Of a stretch of 64,000 nt of DNA, positions 1 to 55,484 are shown piece after piece (the stretch's first letter is position 1; each line of letters starts with the position of its first letter). The translations under genes and the position numbers were made by a program. The stretch is from Octopus bimaculoides. Taxonomy: Eukaryota. The notes under the pieces were generated by a model. The model saw only the letters and a program-made list of their open reading frames with translations. It was not told the origin of the DNA and made no database searches. The stretch covers positions 88,650,286 through 88,714,285 of the forward strand of contig NC_068990.1 of assembly GCF_001194135.2 (NCBI RefSeq). The letters run 5' to 3'.

Positions 1-788
1 GACTCACACCATTCAATCCATATATGTAGTAGGAGAAATTACTCCGGGTCACTTTCTGCATCAAAGTTGTGATGACTAATTAAAATTACACCCTTCACAG
101 CTGGTAAAACCATTATGCTAATCTCTTTTTCTGGTCATTAAATTCAGAAGAGAGAAATTCCTTAAGATAATCACTTTTCTTTTCCCATCTTATTAAAAGA
201 ATAATTTTTGAAGAAATAAAATTCCTTAGCTTGTTACATGAGGTTATGAGTGTCCACATTAACCTCTTAATATTTATTTACTTGGTGATGAATGTGAGAT
301 TATTTTAGTTTTCCAAGACAAAACACTGCAAAATCAATAAAGAGATGGGCAATAATCTTTTCCATGACTAGTTATATTCAGTTACATCCTGCATTTTACC
401 TTTCATACTTCTGTGGTTGATAAAACACGCATTAAATACAGGGTTTTACTAATTTTAATCTACATTCACTGCAGAATTTATTATCATGAATATTGGTAAC
501 ATCAACAATAATTATAAATATTTTTGTTGGTGATGGATTGAGAGAATCATCACAAGATCAGACGAAATGTGTTGTGGAATTTTTTCTGGTCTATTGACTT
601 TTGAGTTTGGATCTGGCTGGTGTCAACTTTTCCTTTTCCAGAGCCCATAAAATAAAATACCAGTCAAGTATAGGGGCCAATTTAATCAATCTGCTCCTAC
701 CTCAGATTTTTGTCCATTTTGTTGTATTAGAAATTATTGAATTTGTTTTTTGTTGTTTACATTTTTCTCAATTTTACTTTAATTCTAG

Positions 789-1028
789 TTACTAAGGTCA
801 ATTTTGTAAAAGTAAAAGGTGCAATTCTGGATGTACCTGGGAAAACTTTGTGGAATAAGGAAAATGTAACAGCAGAAGACTGTGCAGAAAAATGTTTGTT
901 TGACAAAACTTGTTTATCATTTGAAATAATGAAGAAAAGTGGAAAATGTTATTTATCAAAGGAGACTGCAGCTTCCATCAAGAAATTGAAAACAGCCAAA
1001 GACAGAGATTACTACCAACAAATAAAAC
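789..1028 (+). CDS. Exon A1, PAN/Apple type A (240 nt)
   Basis: ttctag|TT ACT AAG ... ATA AAA C|gtaatt; [28 protein letters not shown]...DYYQ. Confidence 0.9.
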
Positions 1029-4000
1029 GTAATTATTTTTTGTGTTTCTCTCTTCTTTTGAAATTTGTGATTCCATTTGTGCTTCACAGTTTATAGAAAA
1101 CCATTTCTGTAAAGATATTGACAGATTTATGTATAAGGACAGACATAAACACATTCCAGAAATAAGTAATTTTAGGAACCATACATACTGTTAGGGTATT
1201 TTCACACTGCACTTGTTTATCTTGAACACTTTTCTGTAATATGTTTATGTTTGTTTCTTTTTTTGTGTGCAACAAAGGAAACACTTGTCATTTTCTTAAA
1301 CATGAATAGTATTGTAGTAGTAGTGGTTTCAAATTTTGGCACAAGTTTTGAAGGAACAGTGTTAGTTCTAACCACCAGCCCCAGTTCTTGACTGGTATTA
1401 TATTGTATCTTCACTGGATGGATGAAAGGCAGTTTTCCTTAGCAGAGTTTTGAACTTGAAATGTAAAGAATTGGAAGATGTATAGCAAGGTAGCATGACA
1501 TTTTCACAGTATCTCACCATTTGTTGCTCTCCTCCATAAATTGATATTTAGAATAAGAAAAAATGTAATGCTAATCAATTTAGTTGTGTATTTCTGATAT
1601 ATTTACATGGTTATGGCTGGAAGCCCATCTTATCACCAATGCTTTTACCAAACCCCTGCTTTATTACTTTAATATCTGAGGAATTGTGAGTGAAGAACAA
1701 GTCGATGAGCAACTGGTCTTGTCTAGTTATTTCTTAATTTGCTTTGCAAGTGAATATGAGCTCTGAGGCAAGAGTAACTGGTTTGTCTTTGGAAAGCTTT
1801 ACCACATGTGTACATATTGCCATGCTACTAAAATCAGAGAAACCGTATACTGGAACTAAAGAGTTCTCACAACATTGATCTCAGAATTTTAGATATTTTA
1901 GACCTCTTCTGATGGTGTGCTTTTTTTTAGGATTAAATTACCAAAAGGATACTTCACATGCTGGTTCACCATTTTTTGAACTATGTTAAAATTCTACAAA
2001 AGCACACCATTATAGGAAGGTACCAATGGATTACATGCAACTTAAATTTTGAAAGAAGGTTTCAAATGAGCCTGAAGATGTTCTACATTCACATGAATTC
2101 TGACTTAATTGTCATTTTGTGCATCAATTATTTGTTTATAATGCAGGCATGTGCAACCCATGGATAATGAACGTTCAATGATGATGATGGTGATGATGAT
2201 GATGACCATTTAAAACAAATTGTGCACTAAATTCTATATAATATTTAATATGTGTGTGTGAATATAAAATGTCTTTCTTGTTTTCTTTCATTTCTTTTTT
2301 ATCTAGCCGATGATGATGTTTTTACATTTAAAAAAACTGCCATACCAGAGCATGATACATTTGATCAGATTAAAGGAATCACTTTAAAGGAGTGTGAAGA
2401 TGCTTGCCTTCAAATTCCAGGATGTAAATCTTATGAGTACCATGAAAAAAAAGAATTCTGTAATCCATCTAATGAGACTCACTTGACTTATGACCTTAAA
2501 CCCAACAAAGATGGATGGGATATACATATCATGAACCCAGGTCAGTGGAGTGTATTCATTAAATTTTATGTGTGTCTGCATGCATATGTCGCTTTTGTGT
2601 GTATCTAGACATGCACATATATTATATATATGTGCACATGCACACACACATATTGTCTCAATATCCTTTTGCAGCTTTTCTTTTTTGCAGCGAACACATT
2701 CTGCAAACTTTTTACCTTCCATTTTTTCCACTTTATGGAAGTCAATATTTTTTCTCTTGACATCCGCCTCAGATGATTTTGCTTTTCTCCCAGTTCTGTT
2801 CTTTCTGGAAGAAAATCCCTCACGTAACTGAGATGTGATGTGAACCTGAAATTTCAAATGGTCATAGTCCTTTGGTGGCGGAGGTGCTTAGTGGCTTTTT
2901 ACATAAACAATATTTGAATCAACTATATTTAGACATAATGCTGGAGATATATGGATCACCATACCTTATATCATGTGGAGGCGCTTGGCTTAGTGGTTAG
3001 GGTGTCAGCACCATGATCGTAAGATTATGGTTTCGATTCCTGGACCGGGCGACGTGTTGTGTTCTTAAGCAAAACACTTCATTTCATGTTGCTCCAGTCC
3101 ACTCAGCTGGCAAAAATGAGTAACGCTGCGATGGACTGGCATCCCATCCAGCTGGGGAACACATATGCCATTGAAACTGGGAAACCGGGCCCATGAGCCT
3201 GGCTAGGCTTTAAAAGGGCGCATTTATTTTTTTATACCTTATGTCAGGACTCCAGTGGTTCCACAGTTGAGGAATCTGCTTGATATCAAACATAGTGTTT
3301 ATAGAAAAAAAGCTCGCATTTCTGCAATATTATTTGGCTTCCATAGTGGATTAGGTCTTCCACGAATAGAAATTATGCATTGAGCATATTTATTTGTTTC
3401 CTCCGTGAGAGTTTCAAAAGTACTTTGCAGTAAAAATGAAAATAAATAGTCCAATAGTTGAACATTGGGAGTTTGACCATGTTGTGGACTAGTTTTGTCT
3501 ACGAAATCAAGAATTATGGTTGATGTAGTAATCTTCAACCATATTGCCATAATGTTTTCAATATCATTTTCATCGCTTCCATTTTTATCACTTTCATTAT
3601 CAAAATTTTCTTCGTTTGATGAAGATTTGTAAATATCAATATCAGATTCGTCTGAAGACAAATCCCTGTTTTTTACATTTATGTTTTGTTTAAAGTTGGA
3701 ATCGCTACTTGCTGATGCCATATCATTAAAAATTAAGGTATGCACTTCTCTTTACCACTGTAGTTTTGATATCACTCCTGGTGGTATTTGCTTTACAATG
3801 AGTTAGGCCTAATGGTAACAACAGTTGCCTCACACTGTGTCCAAGAAATCCCCTACATCTAACTTTGATTGGAAAATGCTCTGCTTTCCAGCTTGCATCT
3901 TCATATTCTTCAAGGAGGTTTTCATAAAGATCAATCTTTCAAACCCAAGCAGCATCAATGTTATTTTTATGAAGAACCATTAACTGAGCTAGATTTACAA

Positions 4001-7000
4001 CTTCCCCCCCCCCCCATCATTTTCAAGTTCATGGTGAAGAAAAAATTTTTTTTAATTCCTATCAAAACAGAGAAAATACATGTGGGTGACCTATTCTGAA
4101 ATAGCACGTTTTTATATGTGTAAGCAAATTTCTTCAATTTGATTCATGCAATATGTTTCGTTGTAACATTGTCATTATTTCCTCATTCTCACCCTCTTCC
4201 TAAAATGCACACACCATTGATATCAATTTCTGTTTTCAATTCCAGCTAATGACAAAATAAACTGTGGACCACCAAGAGACATTGCTGGTACATCAAAGTC
4301 CTACAGTTCCACCAACTACAAAGATGAAGTGACTTACACATGTCCACATGGAGAAAAACTAAAATCAAAATGTGAAAAGGACAACAAATGGACTTCATTA
4401 GATTCTACCTGTGAAGGTAATGCAAATAGCTTCTCTCTTTTCATCTCTATGTAATTTTGTTTTATTTTTATGCTAAATGTCTTTGTCAGAGTAGGACTGG
4501 CTGACTATATGGCAATTTCCACAGTGATTATAGATAGAGGGAGGGAGAAAGGAAGCTATCCTCGGTTCAAAGACCTCCCCAAATACTTGCAATAGAGGGG
4601 AAATCATTTATTCTACCCAAGGGCCAGGTATTAAATTGGATGATGGATTAAGTCTACCAACCAAATAGGAGATATGTGGCAGTTTTTCCCTCCAACAGGC
4701 TTCCACACAGCTTTCATCTACCAAATTTCATCCTTAGTTGTGGAGCAAATTTTTAACCACATAAGCAAGACTCCACCCAGACCACAGAGTTGTGAACTAA
4801 CCTTCTTAACCTCACACTTACACCCAAAGGATTCTATGTGTGTCTTCTCTTAATTTCTAACTTTTTCACCCGTACCATACACCATCAGCCAAAACTCTGT
4901 ACAGTATAGTGCTGTGGGTCCTTCACTAGGATTCAGCAATCCTCTATATATATATATATATATACACACATATATCTTTATGTATGTATGTTGATAGATA
5001 TGTAGTTAAGTAGCTATGTATCTAGATAGGTAAGTAGGTTAGTATGGTGGCTGGTTGGTTCATTGTAATATGTCGGTGGAGAGCACCATATATGAGGCAC
5101 TTCCAGAACTTAGTTTTACTGAGGTGAGCAGGTTGTCCACTTCGTATACTCGGACAGCTCCATCCTTTGTCACCTCCTTTGTGTGGTCCAGCATCTAGAG
5201 ATCAGCTCACTATTTGACCTGATATCTTACTGGGTCTTTTTCTTTCATAAGTTCCTTCCACTTCAAGCAATTGGCATCTTCTTTATATAGCTGCCTTCAT
5301 CTAGACATATTACGTGGCCAAGTCACCAGTCTTCTCTCTTGTACATTGCATTACTCCTATTATGCCTAATTTCTCTGTCAACACATTTGCACTTCTTAGA
5401 GCATGCACACTGATATTGCACATTCTTTGGAGCATGCTAGCTTCATTCATCTCTAGTCTTTGTAAATCCTCTCCATTCACAGTCCACATCTCATAGCTAT
5501 ATAATATAGCTGTTTGTACACAAAGACATAAAAATCTGCCTCTCACTCAGAGATTGATTTTTTGTTGCTAACAAGGGTAATAGCTCTCTGAACTTTCTCT
5601 ATCTCATTTGTAATCAAGGTAATTATACATTCAAAATATCTTCCTCCACTGCTAATTAGGTCACCCATGTAACAGACTTCATGGGGGCTTCCTGGAAAAT
5701 CCAATTCCCATGTGTCTTTAACGTTTATTATTCTTGTACATCTGCTACATACAAAGACTACTTTCTCTGTTAACCTTACAGTAATTCCACTGCACCTGTC
5801 ATATGTCCATATGTTACACAGAGTACATCATATGGAATTCCTACCAACACCTTTCCTACTTACTTAACAGGGCACACACATAATATACATTCACTATTGA
5901 TATCAGTTTCTGTTTTCAATTTCAGCTTTTGAAGACATTGACTGTGGAAATCCAAAAGACATTGCTGGTGCAGAAAAGTCCTATGAAACCACCGCCTATA
6001 AATCTGAAGTGACCTATACTTGCCCAGAGGGAGAGCAACTAAAGTCAATATGTGAAAAGGACAACAAATGGAATCCAATTGTGGAAACCTGTAACGGTAA
6101 CATAAGTAGCTTCTTTCTTGTTCTCTCTGTCTATGTAATTTTGTTTTAGTTTTGAGTTAAATGTGTTTGTCATAGGAAGACTGACTGAATACATGACTAG
6201 TTCCTCAATGTCTGTGGGGGAGAACTAGTTATTCTCAGACCAGGGATCTCACAGACGCTTGCAACAAAGTGGACATCTTTAATTCTACCTAAGGGCTGGG
6301 TAATAGTATTAAGCTGGATGATAGATTAATTCTACCAACCAAGAGCTGGAAGTGTGGACAGTTTTTCCTCACCACTTCCACATATTGGCATCCACATAGG
6401 GGTTCCACACTAAATGTTGAACTTAATATTACAAGCTAACACATCTGACACAGCTTATCCTCTGCTGTAAACTGTTGTTTGGTTCAATACCACCACAAGA
6501 CACTTCAGGTGGTCATGGTGATGGTGATGAACAATACTTAGTCACTGTTTATATATTTATTACAATATCAAGCATTCACATTGACTTGCAATTGCTCATG
6601 TTGAACATAGACCACAAGAATCACACAAACGTAGAAAGGAGAGTGGCCACAGAATTTCATTACATAACTGTTTCTGTCATGACTAGCTTATTAAAAGATA
6701 TAAGTACCATCTTGTTGCACTAAATTATGTATTCCTTGTTTAGACACATGGTCATATATACAGGGGAAGGGACAAAATAATGGAAACACCTAGCATCATA
6801 GCATCATAATTTTGAAATATCTATAAAACCATCAAAAGCTTGTTTATTTTTGTTTTTTGATTTATTATTAGTGTTGCTTAATATGTTTAGCTAAAATTGC
6901 TGTTTCTTTTCAGATATCATCAGAAAAAGGTAATTAAAATTCATTAAAAGGACAGATCTTTTGAACTTTCAAAGAGGTCAAATTGTTGGTGCTCATATGA

Positions 7001-10000
7001 CAGGCACTAGTGTAACGAAAACAGCCAAAATGTTTGGTGTATCAAGAAGTACTGTCTCAAAAGTAATGACAGCCTTTGACAAAGAAGGAAAAACCTCCTT
7101 GTTGAAACAAAACTCTGGAAGAAAACCAAAACTTTCAGATAGGGACTGTTGAACTCTTACATGAATTGGTAGAAAGGATCACAAAAGTACAGCTCCCAAA
7201 ATTACTGCAGAGCTTAATGATCACCTCGAGAACACACTTTCCACAAAAACTGTTCACTGGGAGCTGCACAGAGCCAGATTTCATGGGAGGGCTGCAATCA
7301 GAAAACCACCACTTTCAAAAACAAACGTTGCAACACATTTAGAGTGGAGTAAAAAAACCTACAGAATTGGTCCCTAGATCAGTGGAAGAATTTTATTTTC
7401 TCGGATGAGTCATCCTTTACCTTATTTCCGACCACTGGCTGAGTATACGTGTGGAGACAGCCAAAAGAAGCATTTGACCCAGACTGCCTTCTTTCAACTG
7501 TTAAACATGGAGGAGGTTCTGTGATGATCTAGTGGGAGATTCACTCTCAGTATGTGTATGTGTGATGGGGTGTTGGGGTTAAAATTATTGTGTTAATGTC
7601 TTATTTTGGTCATGAAATTCAGAAGAGAGAGCCTTGGAAATCCTCTGGCCCAATGGTTTCCTTTCATGGCAGAATTAATAGTCAAGACTGTTTAAGCATT
7701 TTATCCGATCAAATTCATCCTATGCTTGCAGAACTGTTTTTGGAAGGAAATGCAATCTTTCAGGATGATAATGCACCAATTCACACAGCTAAAGTTGTTA
7801 CTGAATGGCACGAGGAACATTCTAGTGAAGTTGAACATCTTATCTCGCCACCACAGTCCCCAGATCTCAATATTATTGAACATTTATGGTGCATTTTAGA
7901 AAAGCAAGTAAGGAGTCGATGTCTTCCACCATCACTACAAGAACTGGGGACTGTTTTAGCTGAAGAATGGACAAAAATTCCTTTGGAAACAATTCAAACT
8001 TTGAACGAGTCTTTCAAACTTTCTCATAGAATTCAAGCTGTAACTACTGCCAAAGGTGGTCCTACCACATATTAAAATAAATTTGTTTGAAATTTTAAGA
8101 TGCTTCCATTATTTTGTCCAACCCCTGTATTTAGGGAAAACAATGAGATTGTGTGATTTCAAGTGCACTAAATGCCTCTATAAAATGAAGTGAATTGCAC
8201 TGAGGATCAAACCCATATCATTGACACACTTCACTTAATTCCTATTTATACTAAAAGAATACCTATGGCAAAATAATCAGGGTCACTTCCTGCATGGAAA
8301 ACAAATAGCAAAGTGACTACTCGTTGAACCAAAATATTATGATTAATTAAAGATTCACTCTTAGTATGTGTGTGATGGTGTGTCAGGGTTAAAATTATTG
8401 TGTTAATGTTTTATTTTGGTCATGAAATTCAGAAAAGTGAGCCTTGTGAAGATAATCTCTTTTCTTTTTGTCATCTCATTAAAAGTAAAATTTCCACAAA
8501 TTAAAATTTCTTGGTTTGCTAATTTAAGTTGTGAGTGTCCATATTTACGACATAGTTATATGATTCACAAGATGGTGATGGAAGGGAAATGATTTTTGCT
8601 TTCCCAGACAAACCTTTGAAAATTAGTAAAGTGGTGAGCTACATCCTTTTACATTCTCAGTTCAAATCCCAAAAAGTAGTGTTTCACCTTATATACTTCT
8701 TATAAAACAAGTGCTTGTCAAGTACTGAGGTTGATGTATATTCACTGCTCAATGAGTAGCCTTGTGTTTGAGTTAGGAACCATTATCATTAATATTGTTA
8801 CCATCAATAAAAATTATAAATATTTTTCTGTCAAGGATGTATCCATAGAATCGTTTGAGTGTCAGACAAAATGAGTTGTGGCATTTGTTCTGGTTCTTTA
8901 GCTTCAGAGTTTAAATGCTGCTGATGTTAACTTTGCCCTTCTAGGGCCAATGAAATATGATACTGGTCAGTTGTAGATGCCAATTTCGTTGATCAATTCC
9001 TACCTCAAAGTTTTAACTTAACCTCAATGATGAAAAGTTGTTGTTTTTATAGTATATGTTATTGTTTATTGGTTTAAATTTTCCTTTAATTGTAGATGCT
9101 CAGATCCATTTTGTGAAAGTAAAAGGTGCAGCTATAGTTATAACTGGGAAAACTGTGTGGAAGAAGAAAAATTTAACAGCAAAAGACTGTGCAGAAAAAT
9201 GTTTGTCTGTCCCAAAATGTTTATCATTTGAAGTAAATTTAGAAAAAGGAAAATGTTTCTTATCAAAGTATACTGCAACTTCCTCCAAGAAAATTAAGAA
9301 AATCAATATCAGAGATTACTACCAACGAGTAAATTGTAATTATTTTTTGTATTTTATTATAGAAACTAGCAATGCACCCCAGCATTGCCTGGGTGTTATG
9401 TCCTACAGCCACATTGTAATATTTGTTCCTTTCTTATGGGCGGAATCAGCATTCGAGGAGCATCAAGCAAACAATTTTGTTTATAAACATGTTTTTCAGT
9501 AATTTTCTGATGAACAATGCTGAAATTTTTGGCACCAAAAACATGTACAATGGCAGCTTAGATTAGAAGAAAATCCTAACATTGACCTCAAAATGACCTC
9601 AATATTGTGTGATCCAGCCTCGTTTTGGTGTTAATTTTTCTAGTAAAATAGGGTTACTGTTCAAAAAACTTACTTTATGCTGGTAGCTGAAAGATTGCTC
9701 AGTCTTTTGATATCCCATATAGCAAATATTGGTAACTCAGTTTCATGGCTACAACTTGGGTAATGTAGAAGCTGAAATAGTTCTTACTCGTCCCATGATA
9801 TTTGTTGATAATACACATATACATGTACGTTAGCTTCCCCAATGAAAAGGCCATGTTCAAAAGTATTATGGTTTTCAGCAAGCATATTTGGTATCAGCTT
9901 ATACCACTGTTGAGGTCAACAGAATAAAAAGGGACTTTTTGGTTGTATGTATATGTATATATATATAAGGATGTGGGTAAATAGGGTTAGTGGTGTGGGC

Positions 10001-12051
10001 AGTTTGGCATAAATGTATAGGGACGCTCTGCTTCTTGAAAATAAATGGGTTATGCTGTTATGCAGAAGTGGGGCAGTAGTAAGAGAGCAATGTATGGTTT
10101 CATGACTGATGAATGGTGAAAGCCTAAGAAATAAAATAAAGTATATTAACAAGTTGCACAAGAAAAGGACTTTGTGTTGCTTTTGAGTGCAACCATGCAA
10201 AAATAAGCAATCGAGACTTAGGGATGTAAAGAAATTGATGCCAAATGAGGATGTAGAGGTATCCATATTGCAGAAGGTAAGGTACATAGAAAGGAAGCTG
10301 CTTCATTGTGGAAAGTGCCATCTCTGTAATGTTTGGGCAGACTGCATACTTCAGCAAATGTTCAGTGAAGCTGGCAATGCTTCTAGGTAAACTATATTTT
10401 GTGTGTCTTCAGTTTTGGAAGAATAAACATACATGCAACCCTTCTTTCCAAAACATTTTTTTACCAGGAAAATTGGAAGAATGACACAATATACACTCTC
10501 TCTAACAAAACAGATAATTGGATAATCGTATTAATTCCATTATGCAGAAGGCAGAATCGAGAATATTTTGTGAAAATTCTTAAAAATAAAAAGTTACGAG
10601 GGGTTTTAGTATGTGCTTTGATTAGAACTCCGCCGACCTTTTTTTATTTTGTAATTTGTGTTTGTGATGAGCGTATTTAAAAACCTGATCTTCGATATAA
10701 ACTTAAAAGGAAGTTCTTTCAGAAATTGTGTCCTTTAGCTGTTGTTTGTAGCATGTCAGAGGTGACATTTGCACCCCAACTTTTTTTTTCCAAAATTTCT
10801 TTGTATTCCTATGTTTTTCACATTGGAGATGAGGATTTTGCCCTAAAACCACGTTTCCAAAATTTTAATTTTCTCCTCACAGTCCGAACTTTAAAAAAAT
10901 TTTTTTTTTAAATTTTTTAATTTTTTTTTTTTGTAATTTGTTTTATGAATGGACAATATATTATTTTTTTAAAAATCCATCCACAAAAAAATTTTTGGCC
11001 ACAAGACTTTTAAGAATGAATACATAACAAGAACCTACCTGAATGTTTCAGTTGTAGGTAATCTATTTGTATATCTCTCTTCTTATGCTCTGCTTTTATT
11101 TTAGACTAAATGGTCATAAAAACACTTGATATGTTGGTTGACAACCTGTTTAAGGGGGTATTAAAACCATCCCATTAAAGAAGACAAAGTTTCCAATAAG
11201 TCTAAAGATGTTCTACAGCTCTCATAAATTCTGGTTGGGCTATCATTTTGTGGATCATTTATTTGTTTTTAATAAATCGGCTGTTTACAAAATAAAGCAC
11301 CATATTCTCCACAATATTTAATATATGCTTGAAAATGTATGTGTGTGTTTTTCTTTGTTTGTTTCAGTAGGTGGATGTGTATAAAATATATTTCGTTTTA
11401 TATTTTATTTCAGTTGATGGAGGGCCTGTTATGCTGCAAAGGGTTGGCATACCAAAGAAGGCTACTTTAGGACGGCTTAAGAATAAAACCGTAAATGAGT
11501 GTGATAAGGCTTGTCAACAATATGTAGGATGTAACTCTTATCAGTACAATGCTGAAGCTAAATTGTGTGATCTGAGTAATGTGACTCAGTTGACTGATGA
11601 ACTTAAACCCAACGATGGAGAATGGGATATATACTTAGCTAACCCAGGTCAGTAGAGTGTTTCTATTTTATTTATTTTGTGTGCCATATGTATATAAATA
11701 TAAATATATATTACATGCATATATAAATATACATATGTATTGAGACCTTTGGTACTATGTCGTGCCTAAGAAGACCCATCAAGCCAAGTAAAATCCCAGT
11801 CATAGCAGATACTGGTGTCATGCAAATGGCACCCATGCCCGTGGCACATAAAAGCACCTATTACACTCTCAGAGCAGTTAGCATTAAGGAGGACATCCAT
11901 CCATAGAAACCATGCCAAATCAGATTGGAATCTGGTGCAGCCTTCCTTCCAGCTGGCCAGCCCTGGTCAAACTGCCCAACCCATGACAGAATGTACAACA
12001 GATGTTAAATAATGATGGTGATGATGATGAGGAGGATGATGATGATGATGA

Positions 12052-12088
<37 letters not shown>

Positions 12089-18000: not shown

Positions 18001-21000
18001 TCCTCTTTGGTCTCTACAGAGACGACGCTCTAGCCATCTTTAGAAGAGCCAATGTGCACACACTTGATAGGCCTAGAAAGGACCTGTTTAGTGCCCTAGG
18101 CTCCGTGGGACTCAAAATAAATATTGAGACCAACCTCTCCGCTGTGGACTTCATAAATGTCACTTTAGACTTAGGCTCCAGTACACACAGGCCCTACCTC
18201 AAACCAAACAAGAGGCTGTCATACATCAACACAGCCCCCTGCCATCCCCTATCGTGTTCAAGAACCTTGTGAAAGGTGTCAGAAAGAGGATTTTGAATTT
18301 ATCCTCAAGGCAATAAATTTCTAATGCCACAGCCCCCTATTACAATGAGACACTGGTATCCAGTGGGTTTAAGGACCACATCTCCTATAAGCTGGGCCCT
18401 AGCACCCACAAAAGGAAGTGCTGCCGGAATGTTGTTTGGTCACTCAGTGTCAAGACATATGGGAAGAATATTCCTCAGGTTAGTAGACAAACACTTCATG
18501 CAGACACACAGATACAGGCGTTTTTTCAAAAGGCACAACCTAAGGGTCTCCTTTGGTTGTAAACCCAACATGCAAAGTATATTAGCAAACACCCATAAAA
18601 TGTGGGAGGAGTGTGTATATGTGTGTGGGGGTGGGAGGGGAATATGAGGCTGTGGTGGTACCCAGACCTAGTGACCATAGTAATAACAGCAGTGGTCCAT
18701 CCAACAACGTTGATGGCAATGGCAACAGTGACAGCAGCAGAAACACCGTTGCCATTGCCAACAACCCCAACCCTAGCGCTACTGCCAGAGATGACAACCA
18801 CACCAACACCAGCAGCACCAGTAAAGCTACCAGCCCCATGCCTAGTATCACCAATGACGGCAGCCACATAACCTTCAGCAACTGCAGCAGCAACACTATG
18901 GCCAGGGATGACTTCAACAACAACAGTCACAGTGATATTGTCAGACCCACACTCCCTAATAACAGTACCAATAACAGCTACAGTAACAGTAGTAGTAACA
19001 ACAATATCTCCAGTTCCAGAGCCAATGGAAGATGCACCAGAAATGTGAACAAAACCAACACTGCAATCCGGAAATATATTGGGTCAGCTGGAACTGCCTT
19101 CAAGCAGTGCCTGTACAACTACAGGTGCTCTTTCAGTATTCTGGAAAGACAATTCATCACATCCCTGGCAAGCCATGTGTGGCACCTTAAAGATGGCGTG
19201 ACCATATATGATATCACCACCCTCTTATCATAGACCATGTTCCTATTAATAAAGAACTTAATTGATATTGCTGCCATATCAATAATACAATGTGATCTCC
19301 ATTGACCAATAATTGCCCAGCATTTAGGAGTTATCTTTAATTTGTCTCCTTTGTTGTCTACAAGTATGATATGATAGGTTGGTTTAAGGAGCCTATGAAG
19401 GTTTAAGCTGCATGGAACCAAGTCAAACTGTTATTAAATAATACTTACATATGTACATATATACATACATAAATGCATATATGTAAGTATGACTCTATAT
19501 ATGTATGCATGTATGTATATTTGTGTACTTCAATTTGATTCACTCAATATCTTTTGTTCCAAATGCATCATTATCTCCTTGTTTTCACCCTCTTCCTGAC
19601 ACATACTCACAAATGATATCAATTTCTTTTTTTCATTTTCAGCTTATGCAAATGTTAACTGTGGGCCTCCCAAAGATATTGTTAATACATCAAAGTCCTA
19701 CAAAACCACTGCCTATAAATCTGAAGTACTCTATACTTGTTCAAATGGAGTACAACTAAAGTCAATATGCCAAAAGGACAACAAATGGACACCAGTAGGG
19801 TCTTCCTGTAAAGGTAACATAAACACCTTCTTTCCTATTGCCTCTGTCAAAGTAATTTGTTAAATTTTTGTGTTAAATATCTTTGCCAAAAGAGACTGGT
19901 TGGCTCCATTACAATTTCCATGGTGTTTGTGGCTGGTGGGAAGGAGAGAGGAAGTTATCCTCAGACTAGAGACTTCTCCAAATGCTTGCAAAAATGTGGA
20001 TTCCATTAATATTACCAAAGAGCCAGATAATGCTATTAAATTGGGTGATGAATTCAGTTTGCTGATGAAGAACTTGAAGTCTAGAAACTTGTCACCAGTT
20101 AGCTTCCAAAATGTTTCCATCCAGTAAACTTCATCCTCAAGGATTTTGAAACAAATTTTTAACTACACACACAAAACTCTACCCAATACTACACTGTTGT
20201 TAAGTAAACTTATTAGCTATACTTCACCTCATCTTGATACATTTTGCTCTTAATTTCTAACGTGATCTTTCTCACCCATATTTTATGTCATCATCCAAAA
20301 CTCAGTACAATTTAATGCCCTGAGTCATTCTTTAATAAGACTCTGCAATCCTCTGAAACAAACTTGTACTCCTTTTGCTCTCTCTCAATTCTCCACCCTT
20401 GATTATAACAATACTACTACTACTACTACTACTACTACTAAGAATAATAATAATAACAACAACAACAATACTACTAATAATGATAATAATAAAGATTCTT
20501 GATTTGCACACAAAGCCAACAATTTTTAATGAACAGGTATTGTCATCACCATCAACCTTACAATTTGACTGGTCCTTTATGACATTGACACCCACAAGGA
20601 TGAGAAACAAAGTTAACTTTGGTTTCATTTGAAGTGATGTCCAAAAAGAACCATACTGTAAAGCATGTCTTTCAATTCTCTAATTAGTATCCATGTACTA
20701 ATATCCATGTTCTTGAAAATAAAGATGAGAATGGTGATACAAGCCCCTTAAATCTAGCAGGATTTCTATTGGGGACCAGTTGAAGAAACCTGCCTTTGAA
20801 GATCATCCTGAACACCAAGCTATCAGTCAAGCGTAGAGGCTAATTTAAGTGATCAGTTCTTACCTAAAAATTTGGCCTACTTTTTATGTTAGAATTGTTG
20901 TTGTTATTTTTCATTGGCCTAAATTTTGCTCTACCTTTAGATCCTCAGATCAATTTTGTGAAAATAAAAGATACAGCTCTGGATGTACCTGGGAAAACAT

Positions 21001-23097
21001 CGTTGGATAAGGAAGATGTAACAGCAGATGAATGTGCAGAAGAATGTTTGTCTGATGAAAGCTGTTTATCATTTGAAATAAATAAAGAAAATGGAAAATG
21101 TTACTTATCAGAGAAATCTGCTGCTACTTCCAAGAAATTAAAGGGAGACAAAGACACAGATTACTACCAACGAGTAACACGTAATTATTTTTTGTATTTT
21201 ATTATTGGAATTCTCTTTTCAATTATTTCTGAAATTTGTGACTCCATTTGTACTTCGTACTATATAGCAATAACAGCAGCTTTTTCTAATATTTCTAATA
21301 AGTCTCACATACAATATATCCATGCATGCATAACTACACATATATTCACAACATCAAGTGGCAAGATAAATTTCTAAGTACCACTGTGCTAGAGAGAGCT
21401 AGTATTTCAATTATGTATTCTTTCTGAAGTAAATTCCAGTTGTAATGGAGTTGACATGTAGCATGCATACGTAACTCCAGATTCACTGAATGGATTTTGT
21501 ATGGTGAAGAAGCAGTTGGCTCTTGGTCACATTGTTGACCAAAGAAGACATATAAAGGCACTCACAAGACCAAATTTTGGCCAGCAGTAATTTCTATTGC
21601 TGGATTGAGGACTCAGTGAAAGTTTTCAGAGTCTGGTTTGAACTAAATTTCCAGTTAGTGTGGAACTGGGAAAATATGATCAAGGTAATGGATCTCCCTC
21701 AGAAATGGAACAAGTGGAAGCTCTCCCTGAATAGTTGACCTGCAAGTGCTCCACCCTTATTGCAGCTCTTATTTGTTCTCAAGGTTTTTAATCACTGTTC
21801 CCAAGGCTCTGACAATTATTGGTACTACTATCACCTTTTTCAGCGACCAGAACTGCTTAACTTCCCAAGCTAACCTATCATATCTATCAACTTTTCTTTC
21901 CTCCTTATTGTATACCTTGTTGTCACCCGAACATGCTATATCTATGATCCAGTATCATTATTATTTTTATTCAGGTGGTGAGCCTGCAGAATCATTAGCA
22001 TGCTGGGCATAATGCTTAGCAACATTTCGTTCATCTTTATGTTCTGAGTTCAAATTCCACTAAAGTCAACTTCACATTTTATATTTTTGGGGTCAATAAA
22101 ATAAGTACCAGTTGAGAATTTCAGGCCTTGTGCCTTTAGTAGAAAGGATTATTATCATCATTATTTTGTAGACAATTATGTAGAAGTACTAGCTATTGAA
22201 ATTTTGAATAAAATATTAGAAAATCATCTGGTGCATTGTTTTATAAATGGGTAATATGCTATAAAAAAAAAAACAATCCATCCAGAAAATTATTTTTCAG
22301 CATAAGACTATGTATTCTAGTGCATCAGGACACATAAGCAAAAGCTCATCTCAATGTCACAGTTGTAGGTAATCCATTTGTACATCTGTCTTCTGATGAT
22401 TTGTTTTTCTTTAAGACTGAATGGCCATAGCTAGCACATGATATGTTTAAGGTATTGTCAACCCTACAAATATACACCATGAGAGGAGATGTGTACAAAT
22501 ATATTGTCTGCACCCTATGTATTGAGACAAGCTTTTAAAAGAAGTTAGAAAAATGTTCTATAACATAGATGAAGTCTGATTAAGATATCATTTTGTAGAT
22601 CAGTTATTAGTTTATTAATAGAACATCAAATTAAAAAATCATGCACCACATGCTTTTCAATATTCAATATATGTGTGTGATGCATGTGATGTGTATTTGG
22701 GATTAAGTTGGTGGATGACTATAAAATATATTTCTTGTGTTTTTCTTCCTTTCCAGCTGATGACAAGCCTTTCATGATAAGGAAAGTTAGCGTATCAAAG
22801 AAGACTAAGATAGGACGTCTTCAGGATGTGAAATTAAAGGATTGTAACAAAGTTTGCAATCACTATGCAGGATGTAACTCTTATCAGTACAATGAGCAAG
22901 AGAAGATGTGTGATCTGAGTAATGTGACTCAGATGAGTAATGAACTTAAACCCAACAATGGAAGCTGGGACATATACATAATTAACCCAGGTCAGTAGAG
23001 TGTTTCCAGCTTCTTTATTATATGTATGTCTGTGTTTATTTATATATAAATATATGTATGGGTGCAGAAAACAGATGTTAAAGGGTGATGATGATGA

Positions 23098-23138
<41 letters not shown>

Positions 23139-25206
23139 NNNNNNNNNNNNNNNNNNNNNNNNNNNNNNNNNNNNNNNNNNNNNNNNNNNNNNNNNNNNNN
23201 NNNNNNNNNNNNNNNNNNNNNNNNNNNNNNNNNNNNNNNNNNNNNNNNNNNNNNNNNNNNNNNNNNNNNNNNNNNNNNNNNNNNNNNNNNNNNNNNNNNN
23301 NNNNNNNNNNNNNNNNNNNNNNNNNNNNNNNNNNNNNNNNNNNNNNNNNNNNNNNNNNNNNNNNNNNNNNNNNNNNNNNNNNNNNNNNNNNNNNNNNNNN
23401 NNNNNNNNNNNNNNNNNNNNNNNNNNNNNNNNNNNNNNNNNNNNNNNNNNNNNNNNNNNNNNNNNNNNNNNNNNNNNNNNNNNNNNNNNNNNNNNNNNNN
23501 NNNNNNNNNNNNNNNNNNNNNNNNNNNNNNNNNNNNNNNNNNNNNNNNNNNNNNNNNNNNNNNNNNNNNNNNNNNNNNNNNNNNNNNNNNNNNNNNNNNN
23601 NNNNNNNNNNNNNNNNNNNNNNNNNNNNNNNNNNNNNNNNNNNNNNNNNNNNNNNNNNNNNNNNNNNNNNNNNNNNNNNNNNNNNNNNNNNNNNNNNNNN
23701 NNNNNNNNNNNNNNNNNNNNNNNNNNNNNNNNNNNNNNNNNNNNNNNNNNNNNNNNNNNNNNNNNNNNNNNNNNNNNNNNNNNNNNNNNNNNNNNNNNNN
23801 NNNNNNGCGGACGTTAAACGATGATGATGATGATGATGATATATATATATAAGATACAGAAATAAATCTATTTCCCAAATGTGTGATAATGCTATAAATA
23901 GCGTGATCAGGATAAATTATCCATTTATTGCAGGAAAATACGTTACTGGCCAGCCATGAGACTCGAACTCACATCTCTGTGATTACACGTCAAGTGTTTT
24001 ACCATTAAACTAAACTGCCCAGCAACGAATTCTTCTGCAATTTTAGAACTTGTAAATTTAGCTTCATAAGACGCTAACGTTAAATTCAACTTTACAATGA
24101 AAGTAAACAAACAAAGTTTGTTTTTAGAAGCATTGAGATGTATTGTAAGATACAGAAATATATTTATTACTCAAACACGTGATAATGCTATAAATAGCGT
24201 GATCAGGATAAATTATCCATACATGCTGGCATGGGTTGGATGGCTTGACTAAAGCTAGCAAGCTGGAGAGATGCACCAGACTGCAGTCTGATTTGGCATG
24301 GTTTCTACGGTTGAATGCCCTTCTTAATGCCAACCATTTTATGGTGTGCTGAATGCTTTTACATGGCACCAGCAAGTGCACTTTTATATGGCACCAGCAC
24401 AAGTGCTTTTTATGTGGCACCAGCACAGGATTCTTGCAGGCTAATCCTTTTCACCAAGGGGACTGACCTTAACACTTCTGCTGTGGACCACAGGTCTTCT
24501 TGAGTACAGCAAAGCACCAGGCATCTTGGCCCTTTGACATCTTGCCTGAAAGGCTCAGTGTCCTGATGTTATCATTCAGTACTTTGTTCCATGTCTTCTA
24601 TGTGCCCCATCTATAAAAATATATATTCTATAAAAATACATATAATATTACATATAAATAAGGATTACATGTAAAAAGTTGTGTTTGATAAATGTAGGGG
24701 GCACAAAATGAATGAGAGGTTTATAAATATAGGAATAAAGATATCAGTCTTCAAAATGGCAGACCACCTAAATCGTCTAAAATTTCTAATACATCTAAAA
24801 TATGAAATAAAAGTGACACAAGATATCAAGGTTAAGAACAGTAAACAAAAAGGATCCAAAAGAATAAGAGAGTGTTCCATCTATAGCCGTTTCAGGGGTA
24901 CATTACCAGTCAGAGTTTAAAATGTTAAAACTTCCATATATGTGATGTTCCCATCATCATCATGATGTACTCCTTGGTGGCTGCCATCATATATATGTAT
25001 ATATAGTAAATCCCCAAAAAACGAAGATCAAACACAAGAATGTGGTACATGCAAAGTATTAGCAGATGCTTAGGGAAGGAAAGAAGGTAGTTTTTACATT
25101 TTGAGCAAAGCTCTTTGTCAGAAACAGGAGACGGAAAAAAGTCCAAGAGAAAAGGAAGAAGGAGGGGAAAAAATCACTAATGATCCACATGTGGTTACAT
25201 TTTGAA

Positions 25207-25253
<47 letters not shown>

Positions 25254-28200
25254 ATAGGTAAATTGTCACCATTTTATACTTTTAATTTTGCATTTGCGCA
25301 TTGTTTGTTTTTGATTTTGTGGGAAGATGAATGGAAGCACAACATTGCTATCACTAGTGATTACTCCAAACACTATGATGTTGACTGGATGTTTGATTTT
25401 TATCATTCTCACTACATGTTCTAAGATTGCACTGTCCTCAGATTGACACCCAAACACTCTGAAATGTCCACATTGGAACTTCTGGCACAAATGTAATTAT
25501 CTCCTCATTCTCCCCTTCTTCCTAACATATACTCCCAATTGACATCACTTTCTTTTATCAATTACAGTTGTCACAAAAATTAACTGTGGACCACCAAAAG
25601 ATGTTGTTGGTGCATCTAAATCCTATGATACTACTACCTATGAATCTGAAGTGATCTATACTTGTCATGATGGAAAAGAATTAAAGGCAACATGTAAAGA
25701 AGACAAGAAATGGGCTCCAGAGGTGTCTTGTAAAGGTAATATAAATAGGTTCTATCTTCATAATTTTCTTTTAGCTTTGTGTTCCAAGTTTATGTCAAAG
25801 GAAGTGTGACTGTGTCCATGAAAATTTTCATTGTGTTTCTGATTGGTAGGAGGGTCAGAGATAGTTATCCTCAAACTAGAGACCTTCCTAAATGTTTGCA
25901 ACACAGTGGGCTTCATTAAAGATTTTGAAGAGCCAGGTAATGGTATTAATTTGGTTGATGGATTAAGCCAGCTGAACAAGAGCAGCAAGTGAGAAAGCAT
26001 GTTCTCTCCTGCAGGCTTCTGCAAAGTTTCCTTCCACCAAATTCCATTCACAATCCTTAATCAAGAAGCAGATTTTTAATCATGCAGCCATAAGTGCAGA
26101 CAGTACCAGATTCTTGTCAAGTAAACTTATTACCTCCACAGTTCTATCTCAGCTAACCTAGGCAGTTTTTCTCTTAACTTCTAACTTCAGCTCTCTCACC
26201 CATACTTTGCTTCATCCTCTAAAACTCAGAACAATGCAACACATTGAATTTTCCTTTACTGGAACTCAGTAATCATCCAAAACTTTTGATACTCTAATGG
26301 TCATTCATTCCACCATCCTAAATCATAATGAGACAAATAATAACAGTGGTTTCTGAAGAGTCTGAATACATACCATAAAGCATTTCTTTCAGTTTTATAT
26401 TTAGTATTCATGTATACGTTTAAAATAAAGATGAGAATGATGATACATTTCTCTTGAATGTTGAAGGATCTTTATCTAAAACTAATTGATGAACCCCCAC
26501 CATCAAAGATCATCATGAACGCCAAGGACAAGTGTCCTCTCCGAGTAATATTCTTTGAGATTCAGGTTTATGTAGTGCACGATCCATCCACTCTCATGTC
26601 ACTTTCAATAATTTCCCTAGAGGAGAATATCTTCCTCTCCATCCTCATCTTCTTTACAAGTGAAACTTTAAAAATACAGATTAGGTACTGACCAAAGAGG
26701 AAAACTCCAATTGCCAGACCTTTCAACCTCATCCATCACACAACCTCTTTTACTACAGCTAGCAGACAGAGGAAAAGGAACATCTTTGCTCAGTTAAAGG
26801 AGGATATGAGGTGATCATAATGATGGACTTGAATGATAGTCAGATCGTTCCACACACACAATAGCAGCAGTTTGACATAAATCTACAAGTCTATAATGCA
26901 TATAATGCATGGACACTGACAGTGCATGTAAAATTAATGTGTTCCACTGTGAAAATCTTGCACAGCACTGTCTATCAGAACTTCTATGACTAGATTTTCT
27001 CTTGGTTTTACTGAGCTATTTGATAACACTGCCAAGGGCTCCATGAAGTTGCCATAGCATTCCATGTCCAAGAAGTTCTTTGAAACAAACTTACCACCTT
27101 ATTCACATTGAACCCCAGAATATCCTTGTGAATATCAATGATCTTCCACTCAATTAACCCTCTATAGATACAAGCATGTAATGCCCACTAATTACATTGC
27201 CCAATCGAGTTTAATCGTATATACTTAGGATTACATTAGGTGATCTGGCATTAATAAACAGGCACATTGAGACACAGTTGTTCTTGCTGGATGCGGACCA
27301 CAGGGTACCATAGAATTCACGACATAGCTGTTTCTCTCACAAGTAGCTTATAAGAACATATAAGTATCACCACAGTGTAATCAATTATCTATTCATTATT
27401 TAAGAATATGACCAAACATAATTAGAAATGCCATGAGTTTATGTGAAATTCATGTCTTTCTGAAGGTCTCTTATTGTTTATGTAAAATGAACTGACTTAA
27501 ACTGAGAATCAAACCTGAATCATTGACTCACACCATTCAATCCATATATGTAGATGAGGAAAATACTCAGGGTCACTTTCTGCATCAAAAACAAATAGAA
27601 AAATGGCTACTTATTGAAGTTGTGATGACTAATTAAAATTACACCCTCAACAGCTGGTAAAATCATTATGCTAATCTCTTTTTCTGGTCATTAAATTCAG
27701 AAGAGAGAAATTCCTTAAGATAATCACTTTTCTTTTCCCATCTCATTAAAAGAATAATTTTTGAAGAAATAAAATTCCTTAGCTGGTTACATGAGGTTGT
27801 GAGTGTCCACATTAATATTTATTTACTTGGTGATGAATGTGAGATTATTTTAGTTTTCCAAGACAAAACACTGCAAAATCAATAAAGAGATGGGCAATAA
27901 TCTTTTCCATGACTAGTCATATTCAGTTACATCCTTTCACATTCTAGGTTCAAATCCCATCTAAATGTACTTCAGCTTTCATACTTCTGTGGTTGATAAA
28001 ACAAGCATTAGTCAAGTACAATTGAATCGATCAGCTCCTACCTCAAACTTTTGTACATCTTTCTATATTAGAAATTATTGATGTTGTTTTTGTTGTTTAC
28101 ATTTGTCTCAATCTTCCTTTAATTCTAGTTACTAAGGTCAATTTTGTGAGAGTAAAAGATGCAATTCTGGATGTACCTGGAAAAACTTTGTTGAGAAAAA

Positions 28201-28683
28201 AAAATGTGTCAACAGAATTCTGTGCAGAAAAATGTTTGTCTGACAAAACTTGTTTATCTTTTGAAATAACTAAAGCAAGTGGAAAATGTTATTTATCAAA
28301 GGAAACTGCAGCTACTTCCAAGAAAATAAAATCAGCCAAAGACAGAGATTACTACCAACAAGTAGATTGTAATTATTCTTTGTATTTCTCTTTTTCTGAA
28401 ATTTATGATTGCATTTATACTTCATAGTTTATAGAAAACCATTTCTGTAAAGACATTGACAGGTTTAACCACTCGGACAGACAAGCACATTCCAGAAATA
28501 AGTAATTTTAGTAAATATAAATACTGTTAGGGCCTTTTCACACTGCATTTGTTTACCTTGAACACTTTTCTGTATTATGTTTTCAATTGCTTCTTTGTGT
28601 GTGTGTGTGTGTGTGTTCTTGTGCATGTGTGTGTGTAAGAAAGGAAATACTTGTCACTTTACTTAAACATGAATATTATGATG

Positions 28684-28729
<46 letters not shown>

Positions 28730-30304
28730 GGAAACTCACAGCTTATTTTGCTGGGTATGATGGAAAGTGTCAGCTGTCCACAGCCAGCAGACTAAGGTGA
28801 CACTTGTTTACTGGTCATGCTTCAAGAACCCTGCAAGGAATTCTTGCAGTTCCAAGCAATGCTGATTTTTGTAGGTGATCCTCCTTCACACTTGCACCAG
28901 TCTTTTTCAGCCATGTTGGTAGCTGAGTGCTGATATTTCCAAATGCACCAATTACTATTGGCATCACGTCTACTCTCTTCATTGACCACAGCCTTCGTAT
29001 TTCTCACTTTGAATCATCATAAGTGTTTATTTTGTCATCAAATTAGCCTGAAGATGTTTTACATTCACATGAATTTTAAGTTGTCATTTTGTAGATCAAT
29101 TATTTGTTTATAATGCAGGTATGCCAAACCCATGCCAGCATGGAAAAATGAACGTTCAATAATGATGATGATGAGGAGGCTCACATTCATCATTGTCATC
29201 ATTATTGTCATCATCACCATCATCATCGTTGTCGTCATTGTCATCATTTAAAACAAATTATGCAACAGATGCTATAAAATATTTAATGTGTGTGTGAATA
29301 TAAAATATTTTTCTTGTTTTCTTTCATTTCTTCTTTATCTAGCCGATGATGATCTTTTAACATTAAAAAAAATTGCCATACCAGGGCATGATTCACCTGA
29401 TCGGATTAAAGGAATCAGTTTAAAGGAGTGTGATCGTGCTTGTCTTCAAATTCCAGGATGTAAATCTTATGAGTATCATGAACAAAATAAATCCTGTATT
29501 CCATCTAATGAGACTCACCTGACTTATGACCTTAAACCCAACAAAGATGGATGGGATATACATATCATGAACCCAGGTCAGTGGAGTGTAATTCATTTAT
29601 TTCACGTGTCTGTATGCATGTGTGTGCTAGTTTGTTTGTTTCTACATATACACATATCTAATATGTATATGCTTATAACAAACACGCACACACATATATG
29701 TACATGATTTCAAGGGAATCCTGTAGCTTATAGTCAACAGCTTGTTAGCATCTAGCATAGATATGGCTTGTATATAACACTGAAAGGCAAAAATAATAGA
29801 TCAATAAAATTCATTATTCAATATATCACATTCACTTCATTGTACATCAAAATTGATGGAATAATTTTGTTAAGATGACAAATGTTCCAAATTGAATAGC
29901 TATGTAGATTGCCCAGTATGTGATGAATAAACATAGGAATAGTGAAAAATGGAGAAATACACTCAAGTAAAGCACATATTTCTGAAGCAGAACAATTAAC
30001 ACTATAAGTGTAATTACATCATAAAATAATGATATAATATGCTTCATCTTCAGGTATGACACCACTCAGATCAAATCAAATTCCACGTTGAGTATTGATG
30101 CAAATATAAAGCATGTTGTGAATTAATTTCACTTATGATTTGAATTTTTCTGCTTTGGAAATATGTTGTAGTTAACTGCATTTGTTCATTATTTTTATTG
30201 ATACGGCAATTTGACCAGGGGAGCCCAACAAAGTAAGTAATAAGTTTAAAAATGGGTTCTGGGTTCAGTTTGTTACATGTGTGTGTGTGTGTATGAGCAT
30301 ATGT

Positions 30305-30378
<74 letters not shown>

Positions 30379-36300: not shown

Positions 36301-36612
36301 ATGTATGCAGCAGCATATCATAATCCTTTTTAAAGCCCATCCAGGCCATGCAAAAATCTATTTGGTACCATTTGCAGTTCTTCATTATGACCTTGGTGGT
36401 TCTCGGTGTCTTGGATCATTTCCAGCATACCTTTGCAGCTTAAATATTGACACAGCTTTTGCAAAAAGTCTCAAGATTTTCAACAACTCTCTTAAATTCT
36501 GATTAGAGTGTCATTTTGAGGATCAATTCTTTGCTTATTACAAATTGTCCACTTACATGATTATGCAATACATGCGTTTCAGTATTTAATATATTCTAGA
36601 AAATATGTGTAT

Positions 36613-36658
<46 letters not shown>

Positions 36659-42600: not shown

Positions 42601-42896
42601 CTTTTGCATCGAAGGTCGGCGATTGTCGTACGCTGAAGAAGGGAAATAAACCTGAAACTCGAGTACGTACGTATCGTAGATCAAGATGGGAAGGATAACC
42701 TCCCTTGGCAAATACAGCCAGGACACAGAAGTGTGTCGATAGCCAGCTGGAGGAGATGTCCTCCTGGGGCTAAAAGCAACAGTAACATCCACCCCTCGGG
42801 GTCAGCCAGATTTAAGTGGCAAATATACTTCACTTTATCGTGCAGTTACNNNNNNNNNNNNNNNNNNNNNNNNNNNNNNNNNNNNNNNNNNNNNNN

Positions 42897-42956
<60 letters not shown>

Positions 42957-46272: not shown

Positions 46273-46345
<73 letters not shown>

Positions 46346-46720: not shown

Positions 46721-46779
<59 letters not shown>

Positions 46780-47857: not shown

Positions 47858-47892
<35 letters not shown>

Positions 47893-54561: not shown

Positions 54562-54595
<34 letters not shown>

Positions 54596-55434: not shown

Positions 55435-55484
<50 letters not shown>

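Follow-up and report, generated by a model that had tools for sequence, protein, structure and literature searches.

Several invertebrate systems are built as arrays of related units. The ZP-N repeats of abalone VERL belong to a tandem-repeat recognition protein that has undergone both concerted evolution and positive selection, and the mollusc FREPs and sea-urchin 185/333 are diversified gene arrays of immune type. The locus described here lies in a 64,000-nucleotide stretch of the Octopus bimaculoides genome (NCBI RefSeq assembly GCF_001194135.2, contig NC_068990.1, positions 88,650,286 to 88,714,285 of the forward strand), hereafter the window, and is an array of exons that encode two types of PAN/apple domain (PAN-A and PAN-B) and Sushi domains (C exons). 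It is an Octopus-restricted, fast-evolving tandem array of extracellular domains under concerted evolution, a known kind of system. The account judged probable here is that this array has grown by duplication and been patched by gene conversion, that the PAN-B exons B1 and B5 differ by near-neutral change, and that diversifying selection acts at a minority of codons. B1 and B5 had been singled out in an earlier note for their excess of nonsynonymous over synonymous differences.

The window covers an internal part of the array, is AT-rich (about 35% G+C), contains five assembly gaps, and holds on its plus strand 36 exon-sized open segments, comprising 12 PAN-A, 12 PAN-B and 12 Sushi exons (Table 1). 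PAN-A exons measure 240 nucleotides (nt; 237 in two of the 12), PAN-B exons 234 nt and Sushi exons 171 nt (168 in two of the 12); Sushi exon C3 could be read over only 110 of its ~171 nt, the remainder falling in an assembly gap. All 36 exons have AG/GT at homologous borders, and none contains a stop codon. Every intron is in phase 1, the codon it interrupts having one base at the end of the exon before and two at the start of the exon after, so that consecutive exons can be spliced to encode very long, putatively secreted repeat proteins with the layout (PAN-A–PAN-B–Sushi(1–2))n. A public gene-model fragment of 279 residues (P0009) is identical to part of B11 followed by C12, A12 and B12, joined in that order, which means that the gene predictor spliced these exons consecutively. 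Exons follow the order A-B-C(-C), and odd and even PAN-B subtypes alternate strictly, the odd ones bearing the signature C(K/N/T)SYEY(H/K/N)E and the even ones CNSYQYN or CNSYEYN.

PAN/apple and Sushi domains in single exons

PAN-A and PAN-B are shown to be PAN/apple domains and the C exons to be Sushi/CCP domains, with one whole disulfide-bonded extracellular domain per exon. Pfam hidden Markov models (HMMs) gave scores above the gathering cut-off of 21.4 bits for PAN_1 (PF00024) in B1, B5, B2 and A1, and above that of 20.7 bits for Sushi (PF00084) in C1 (Table 1). Each of the 12 PAN-B exons has the cysteines C29, C33, C39 and C51, four cysteines are kept in 12/12 PAN-A exons, and four cysteines with a conserved tryptophan are found in each of the 11 complete Sushi exons. 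An AlphaFold (AF2) model of PAN-B, based on all 12 copies in the window, reached medium confidence (predicted local distance difference test, pLDDT, 70.7). Its top Foldseek matches are all PAN/apple domains, namely those of plasminogen, HGF, factor XI, MIC4 and SML-2, with template modelling (TM) scores of up to 0.77 (0.76–0.77 for the plasminogen PAN domain; TMq 0.70–0.77 to the PAN domains of plasminogen and HGF). The closest solved sequence is that of the Toxoplasma MIC4 apple domains (4a5v), at the weak similarity of E = 0.002.

The octopus domains resemble the PAN/apple superfamily in their HMM scores, four invariant cysteines and predicted strand-helix-strand PAN fold. They differ from it in that one locus interleaves two PAN subtypes and Sushi domains dozens of times over, in that each domain occupies a single phase-1/1 exon, and in their identity of 12–20% to any solved PAN domain. 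MIC4 and SML-2 are apple-domain lectins that bind glycans, and octopus PAN-B resembles them only in fold and in the weak sequence match to 4a5v.

A second comparison is with SVEP1, likewise an extracellular repeat protein of very large size that contains Sushi/CCP repeats. However, PAN domains are not part of SVEP1, and Pfam detected none of its vWA, EGF, HYR or pentraxin domains in the window modules, where only PAN and Sushi were found; the precomputed Pfam lists of the octopus relatives also name only these two. The absence of those SVEP1 domains from the window modules speaks against an SVEP1 orthologue, and the name 'SVEP1-like' carried by some relatives stems from Sushi similarity only and not from orthology.

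The likenesses to the invertebrate arrays named above are analogies. As in VERL, the octopus locus would be an array of similar domain repeats that conversion or unequal exchange has homogenised in part, with an elevated ratio of nonsynonymous to synonymous rates (dN/dS, or omega) in some of them. It differs in domain type and in having far more diverged repeats (40–86% amino-acid identity), and a fertilisation role is known for the VERL side only. With FREPs and 185/333, the locus may share lineage-specific expansion, tandem layout, recombination or conversion between members, and fast-evolving surface positions; however, it is built from other domains, and this likeness is drawn from genomic sequence alone rather than from somatic diversification or immune expression.

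An N-x-T sequon (S54-N55-x-T57) is invariant at codons 55–57 in 12/12 PAN-B exons (2471–2479 in B1), and most PAN-A exons retain N-(V/I/L)-T at codons ~25–27. These recurrent sequons suggest conserved N-glycosylation, and hence a protein of the secretory pathway.

Constraint and possible site-specific selection

Pooled over 13 pairs of partner exons, the proportion of differences was 0.153 at nonsynonymous sites (pN) and 0.191 at synonymous sites (pS), with an intron divergence of 0.163; nonsynonymous sites and introns change at roughly the same speed. Despite this intron-like divergence, the exons are shown not to be decaying. Stop-creating mutations numbered 0, against 18–26 expected per exon class under neutrality at the observed tree lengths (probability of no stop ≤2e-8 per exon class), and exon indels numbered 6 against 73 expected at the intron rate, a 12-fold depletion. 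Eleven PAN-B columns are invariant, including the four cysteines and N55-x-T57, and the overall picture is of a conserved scaffold with a fast-changing remainder. What makes the locus notable is that its exons evolve at the pace of introns, yet all reading frames are kept.

Site models were fitted to each exon class with an implementation of the GY94 codon model with F3x4 frequencies written for this analysis (models M0, M1a and M2a). Whole-exon omega under M0 was 0.73 for A, 0.89 for B and 0.78 for C exons. Likelihood-ratio test (LRT) statistics for M2a against M1a were 22.5 (A), 14.6 (B) and 19.6 (C), with 17–23% of codons assigned to a class at omega ~3–4. Nominal p-values cannot be trusted when alignments are short and recombining, so null data were generated from the fitted M1a model, either free of recombination or with one-breakpoint leaf relabelling (n = 60 for B, 45 for A and 45 for C). 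The largest null LRT was 7.6 (B), 11.9 (A) and 14.4 (C), against 14.3, 21.1 and 18.7 observed with the same pipeline, so that 150/150 nulls fell below the observed values. With a separate tree for each half-exon, the summed LRT was still 12–17. Within PAN-B, codons 1–25 (the first strand and the loop before the helix) gave omega ~1.5–1.6 in all 12 exons and in the odd and even sets, as against ~0.6 for codons 26–77. Posteriors above 0.9 were obtained at PAN-B codons 4, 7, 14, 24 and 50.

Relaxed constraint by itself is a possible, if tentative, alternative to selection at a minority of codons. It would place omega near 1 outside the cysteines and core of a redundant repeat protein, shaped by drift and gene conversion and requiring no positive selection. 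The whole-exon omega values are compatible with this, as are the similarity of pN to intron divergence and the fact that every pairwise confidence interval (CI) includes 1. Several further observations weigh against a positively selected class, and some of them also favour relaxed constraint. For no pair and no whole exon does omega rise significantly past 1, and the M0 estimate for B is not different from 1; even for PAN-B codons 1–25, the estimate of ~1.56 does not significantly exceed it (p = 0.10). The null LRT distribution has a heavier tail than chi-square, which makes nominal p-values too small, and the numbers of replicates were modest. The models also ignore multi-nucleotide mutation and synonymous-rate variation, either of which is known to raise the signal in tests of this type, and adjacent changes do occur in runs. 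In the subclade holding B1 and B5, the LRT was only 7.8–7.9. Alignable intron segments may also understate true neutral divergence. Lastly, the five codons with high posteriors are not consistently the most variable elsewhere in the family: among 47 PAN-B domains from other loci and species they rank 13, 36, 2, 37 and 30 in variability, although variability and posterior do correlate overall in this set (rho 0.57), a partial agreement.

Relaxed constraint does not readily accommodate the superiority of M2a over M1a in three independent exon classes, above all nulls including those with shuffled-label recombination. Nor does it predict that the signal should stay when each partition has its own tree, or that the point estimate of omega for PAN-B codons 1–25 should exceed 1 in the full, odd and even sets. 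Judged from the alignments, the family-level evidence for a positively selected site class is moderate and not yet decisive.

Under the account of duplication, conversion and selection at a minority of codons, the divergence patterns show an array that has grown by tandem segmental duplication and that short conversion tracts continually patch. Purifying selection would maintain the scaffold, namely the cysteines, the N-x-T sequon, the reading frame and the splice sites. According to the site models, roughly one codon in five, mostly in loops or N-terminal and outside the helix and cysteine core, would change faster than neutral. The exons would be spliced into giant secreted glycoproteins displaying many slightly different PAN and Sushi binding surfaces. 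These patterns suggest diversifying selection on the binding surfaces of a putative multivalent extracellular recognition or adhesion protein that faces variable ligands. A bolder and rather unlikely proposal is that the Octopus PAN-PAN-Sushi arrays are a lineage-specific hypervariable recognition system, serving either immune or mucosal pattern recognition or gamete and egg-coat recognition. In such a system, exon duplication, short-tract conversion among ~100 domain exons and diversifying selection on loops would together give rise to a wide range of binding surfaces. Should the site-model signal hold, the array would be a candidate family of cephalopod recognition molecules and a good system for studying the interplay of exon-level duplication, conversion and selection.

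Divergence of B1 and B5

B1 and B5 are positional partners in a tandem duplication, offset by 27,036 nt. A codon-by-codon recount upheld the observations of the earlier note: 21 of 234 nt differ, with 18 nonsynonymous nt accounting for 16 replacements and the other 3 changes synonymous (TGC/TGT, TAC/TAT and TTG/CTG). Replacements lie where it had placed them, including HDTF/HDSP and KKEF/QNKS; the last is at codon 52, and the final ~25 codons (53–77) carry a single synonymous change. It is also correct that pN exceeds pS (0.096 and 0.068).

The suspicion of positive selection that was attached to these counts did not survive formal estimation. Omega was 1.43 by the Nei-Gojobori method (NG86) and 1.47 by maximum likelihood under a codon model with F3x4 frequencies (95% CI 0.46–6.1), and is indistinguishable from 1 (Fisher p = 0.77; LRT against omega = 1, p = 0.55). 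The pair has 187 nonsynonymous and 43.8 synonymous sites among 231 (19% synonymous), and 21 neutral differences would be expected to split 17.0 to 4.0, with a probability of 0.42 of three or fewer synonymous changes. With AT-rich codons and few synonymous sites, a ratio of 18:3 is thus near the neutral expectation. The introns flanking B1 and B5 differ at 43 of 315 aligned sites (0.137), which is above pN and indicates that the low pS is a small-number fluctuation. Among the 66 PAN-B pairs, of which 8 have omega above 1 (median 0.67), this pair ranks third highest. Three runs of adjacent changes (exon nt 54–55, 92–94 and 146–147) would bring the 21 differences down to 17 events, were each run a single mutation, which suggests that some of the differences are multi-nucleotide events.

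The distribution of the replacements is explained by the ancestry of B5. From exon positions ~20 to 150, B5 shares derived states with B11, namely HDSP, a three-base D-R change before Cys2 and the synonymous TGT, and from ~150 on it follows B1 and B9. The order of informative sites in B5 supports this mosaic (max-chi2 = 12.1, permutation p = 0.0026), as does the PHI test on the odd PAN-B subtype (p = 0.004). That replacements cluster ahead of an identical tail is therefore due to a conversion-tract boundary in B5 and not to site-specific selection. Since the 5' part of B5 shares replacements with B11, several of these originated outside the lineages of B1 and B5 that followed the duplication.

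The earlier note had also cited the Sushi pairs C1/C6 (10 replacements, 3 synonymous codons) and C2/C7 (8 and 3) as trending the same way. Its counts stand, but the trend does not, since pN is below pS in both (NG86; 0.086 against 0.158 in C1/C6 and 0.067 against 0.089 in C2/C7).

It is thus quite improbable that B1 and B5, together with C1/C6 and C2/C7, diverged adaptively after duplication through change focused on the N-terminal strand and two loops. Such divergence would fit the excess of pN over pS and the mean posterior for omega > 1 at the sites replaced between B1 and B5 (0.43, against 0.10 elsewhere). Against it stand the two tests of omega, a pN below the local intron divergence in a pair that is only the third most extreme of 66, the B11-like ancestry that accounts for the clustering and for many replacements held in common with B11, and the opposite trend in both Sushi pairs. 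The excess of 18:3 is real, but it is of the size that near-neutral change produces here, and pairwise positive selection is not supported. It would reflect a near-neutral rate outside the cysteine and helix scaffold, a 19% share of synonymous sites and a B11-like origin of the 5' two-thirds of B5. The broader suspicion of fast, partly adaptive exon evolution is partly supported, at the level of the family, whereas the pairwise reading of B1 and B5 fails. As a claim about two exons the matter is minor, yet it is a textbook case of a raw count made striking by few synonymous sites and by differences concentrated in a mosaic.

Array history, features and species range

Units 1–4 and 5–8 are the two copies of one tandem duplication, in which closest pairs run A1~A5, B1~B5 and so on to C5~C10; a second duplication of ~8 kb relates units 9–10 to units 11–12. 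Positional partners vary in their intron divergence, from 0.05 to 0.26 (heterogeneity chi2 = 134, df 12, p = 1e-22). C3 with its upstream splice region (13172–13334) is 98.8% identical to C8 (38200–38362) over a 163-nt tract, whereas identity drops to 79–85% in the intron that follows and in the neighbouring partner exons A2/A6 and B2/B6. The pattern resembles that of a short tract converted very recently, which ends inside or beyond the adjoining gap. Together with the uneven intron divergence, it indicates that the array has been repeatedly patched by conversion or unequal exchange.

A further contrast was seen between C11 and C12 (51634–52848 compared with 59418–60609), where exon divergence is 0.205 and intron divergence 0.087. 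Downstream of these exons, differences amount to 0–11% per 100 nt, and the repeats at 52083–52809 and 59867–60570 are 94–97% identical. Exon-specific acceleration was rejected for this pair, as a sliding window shows a sharp conversion or duplication boundary at ~52040, just past the exon.

That the array consists of decaying pseudo-exons, or is an assembly artefact of collapsed or expanded repeats, is scarcely credible: exon divergence is as fast as that of introns and the draft assembly has five gaps in the window, but open reading frame, splice sites and phase are kept in 36/36 exons with the depletion of stops and indels described above, the gaps lie in or beside microsatellites with flanks collinear with paralogs, and chromosome-level assemblies of three Octopus species carry annotated members of this family. 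At the C3 gap, the right flank is a TGGC/TGGA microsatellite collinear with sequence downstream of C8; both flanks are collinear with C8, so order and orientation are consistent. Neither this gap nor that between B4 and C5 touches B1, B5, C1, C2, C6 or C7.

Table 1. Exons, duplication copies and assembly gaps in the window (positions counted from its first nucleotide).
Feature	Position	Strand	Remarks
PAN-A exon A1	789..1028	+	240 nt; PAN_1 44.4 bits
PAN-B exon B1, odd, unit 1	2307..2540	+	234 nt, phase 1-1, AG/GT, intact open reading frame; PAN_1 32.9 bits
Sushi exon C1	4246..4416	+	171 nt; Pfam Sushi 25.9 bits
Sushi exon C2	5926..6096	+	
PAN-A exon A2	9096..9335	+	
PAN-B exon B2, even	11414..11647	+	PAN_1 33.6 bits
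Sushi exon C3	13225..13334	+	cut by assembly gap 13335-13717
PAN-A exon A3	15622..15861	+	
PAN-B exon B3, odd	17638..17871	+	
Sushi exon C4	19643..19813	+	
PAN-A exon A4	20941..21180	+	
PAN-B exon B4, even	22757..22990	+	
Sushi exon C5	25568..25735	+	168 nt
PAN-A exon A5	28129..28368	+	
PAN-B exon B5, mosaic	29343..29576	+	positional equivalent of B1; AG/GT, 234 nt, phase 1-1; PAN_1 35.2 bits
Sushi exon C6	30732..30902	+	C1 partner, extra Cys
Sushi exon C7	32583..32753	+	C2 partner
PAN-A exon A6	35764..36003	+	
PAN-B exon B6, even	36721..36954	+	
Sushi exon C8	38253..38423	+	
PAN-A exon A7	39081..39320	+	
PAN-B exon B7, odd	41323..41556	+	
Sushi exon C9	43489..43659	+	
PAN-A exon A8	44805..45041	+	237 nt
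PAN-B exon B8, even	45940..46173	+	
Sushi exon C10	48377..48544	+	168 nt
PAN-A exon A9	49130..49366	+	237 nt
PAN-B exon B9, odd	50816..51049	+	closest relative of B1 (86% amino-acid identity)
Sushi exon C11	51807..51977	+	
PAN-A exon A10	53491..53730	+	
PAN-B exon B10, even	55694..55927	+	conserved Trp -> Gly
PAN-A exon A11	57541..57780	+	
PAN-B exon B11, odd	59070..59303	+	resembles donor of B5 5' part; within P0009
Sushi exon C12	59587..59757	+	within P0009
PAN-A exon A12	61336..61575	+	within P0009
PAN-B exon B12, even	62190..62423	+	conserved Trp -> Arg; within P0009
First copy of ~27-kb, 13-exon duplication, units 1-4 (A1 B1 C1 C2, A2 B2 C3, A3 B3 C4, A4 B4 C5)	1..27524	+	blastn collinearity; closest-pair pattern
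Second duplication copy, units 5-8	27525..49000	+	intron divergence from copy 1 0.05 to 0.26
Assembly gap in Sushi exon C3 and downstream intron	13335..13717	.	
Assembly gap, intronic (TA)n microsatellite between B4 and C5	23139..23806	.	

To trace the family, P0001 was searched exhaustively with HMMER against 1.84 billion representative proteins, which returned only 13 proteins at E ≤ 1e-30. Relatives at E ≤ 1e-90 occurred in this search only in O. bimaculoides, O. sinensis and O. vulgaris; the strong relatives are labelled 'uncharacterized' or 'SVEP1-like', with models of up to 2,643 and 4,470 residues. Weaker relatives were found in Argonauta hians and Sepia pharaonis, and the A. hians protein has a hydrophobic N-terminus that resembles a signal peptide (judged by eye), followed by (PAN-A, PAN-B)x2. 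This is a very large protein family made from PAN/apple and Sushi exons, so far octopod-only, and the locus is of moderate interest. A literature search on octopus PAN, apple and Sushi proteins found no paper on the family. In an O. vulgaris brain cell atlas, 'svep1' is named as a hemocyte marker (PMC9712504), a candidate link to the window locus that serves as a lead only.

In O. sinensis, the array covers at least 0.57 Mb of one chromosome. The C-terminus of one protein (P0003), whose gene spans 152 kb, looks at the protein level like an orthologue of units A1 to C3. Two O. sinensis loci (L001 and L002) were rejected as orthologues, being paralogous only, at ≤84% nucleotide identity, and hold too few PAN-B exons for an independent replicate of the site models. 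Their exons are spaced ~2–22 kb apart, and intron size in the array is highly variable between species. For instance, the PAN-A/PAN-B intron of an A11/B11-like unit is 266 nt long in a 1-kb Logan contig from another octopus (L003, positions 1–1011; SRR11869384), compared with 1,289 nt in the window. The PAN-A/PAN-B unit of this contig gave a dN/dS of 0.87 against B11, with an intron divergence of 0.19, and the cross-species comparison, as aligned, is near-neutral and not above.

Individual exons and units of the array show further peculiarities. Unit 10 (A10-B10, 53491–57540) has no Sushi exon before the next PAN-A, whereas the other complete units have one. The tryptophan of the G-W-D motif, otherwise conserved, is changed in B10 (G-D) and B12 (R-D). 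At codon 19 of C6 (30786–30788), a change from Tyr to Cys (TAC to TGT) creates a fifth, unpaired cysteine that is found in no other C exon.

The introns also contain foreign or unusual sequence. A remnant of a Tc1/mariner-type transposase (6934–8072, plus strand; Pfam DDE_3, HTH_Tnp_Tc3_2 and HTH_28) lies in the intron between C2 and A2, is split into at least three reading-frame pieces and is mostly missing from the partner duplication copy. The intron between B3 and C4 holds the sole G+C-rich stretch of the window (18500–19250; G+C of 0.42 in the 18–20 kb bin), with long low-complexity open reading frames on both strands, and may contain a mobile-element or low-complexity insertion. All five gap edges (13335, 23139, 33167, 42850 and 46346) abut microsatellites of the types (TA)n, (TGGC/TGGA)n, (CT)n and (GAT)n. 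Two of the gaps lie ~150–170 nt downstream of the even PAN-B exons B4 and B8, the same intronic (TA)n having broken the assembly in both duplication copies.

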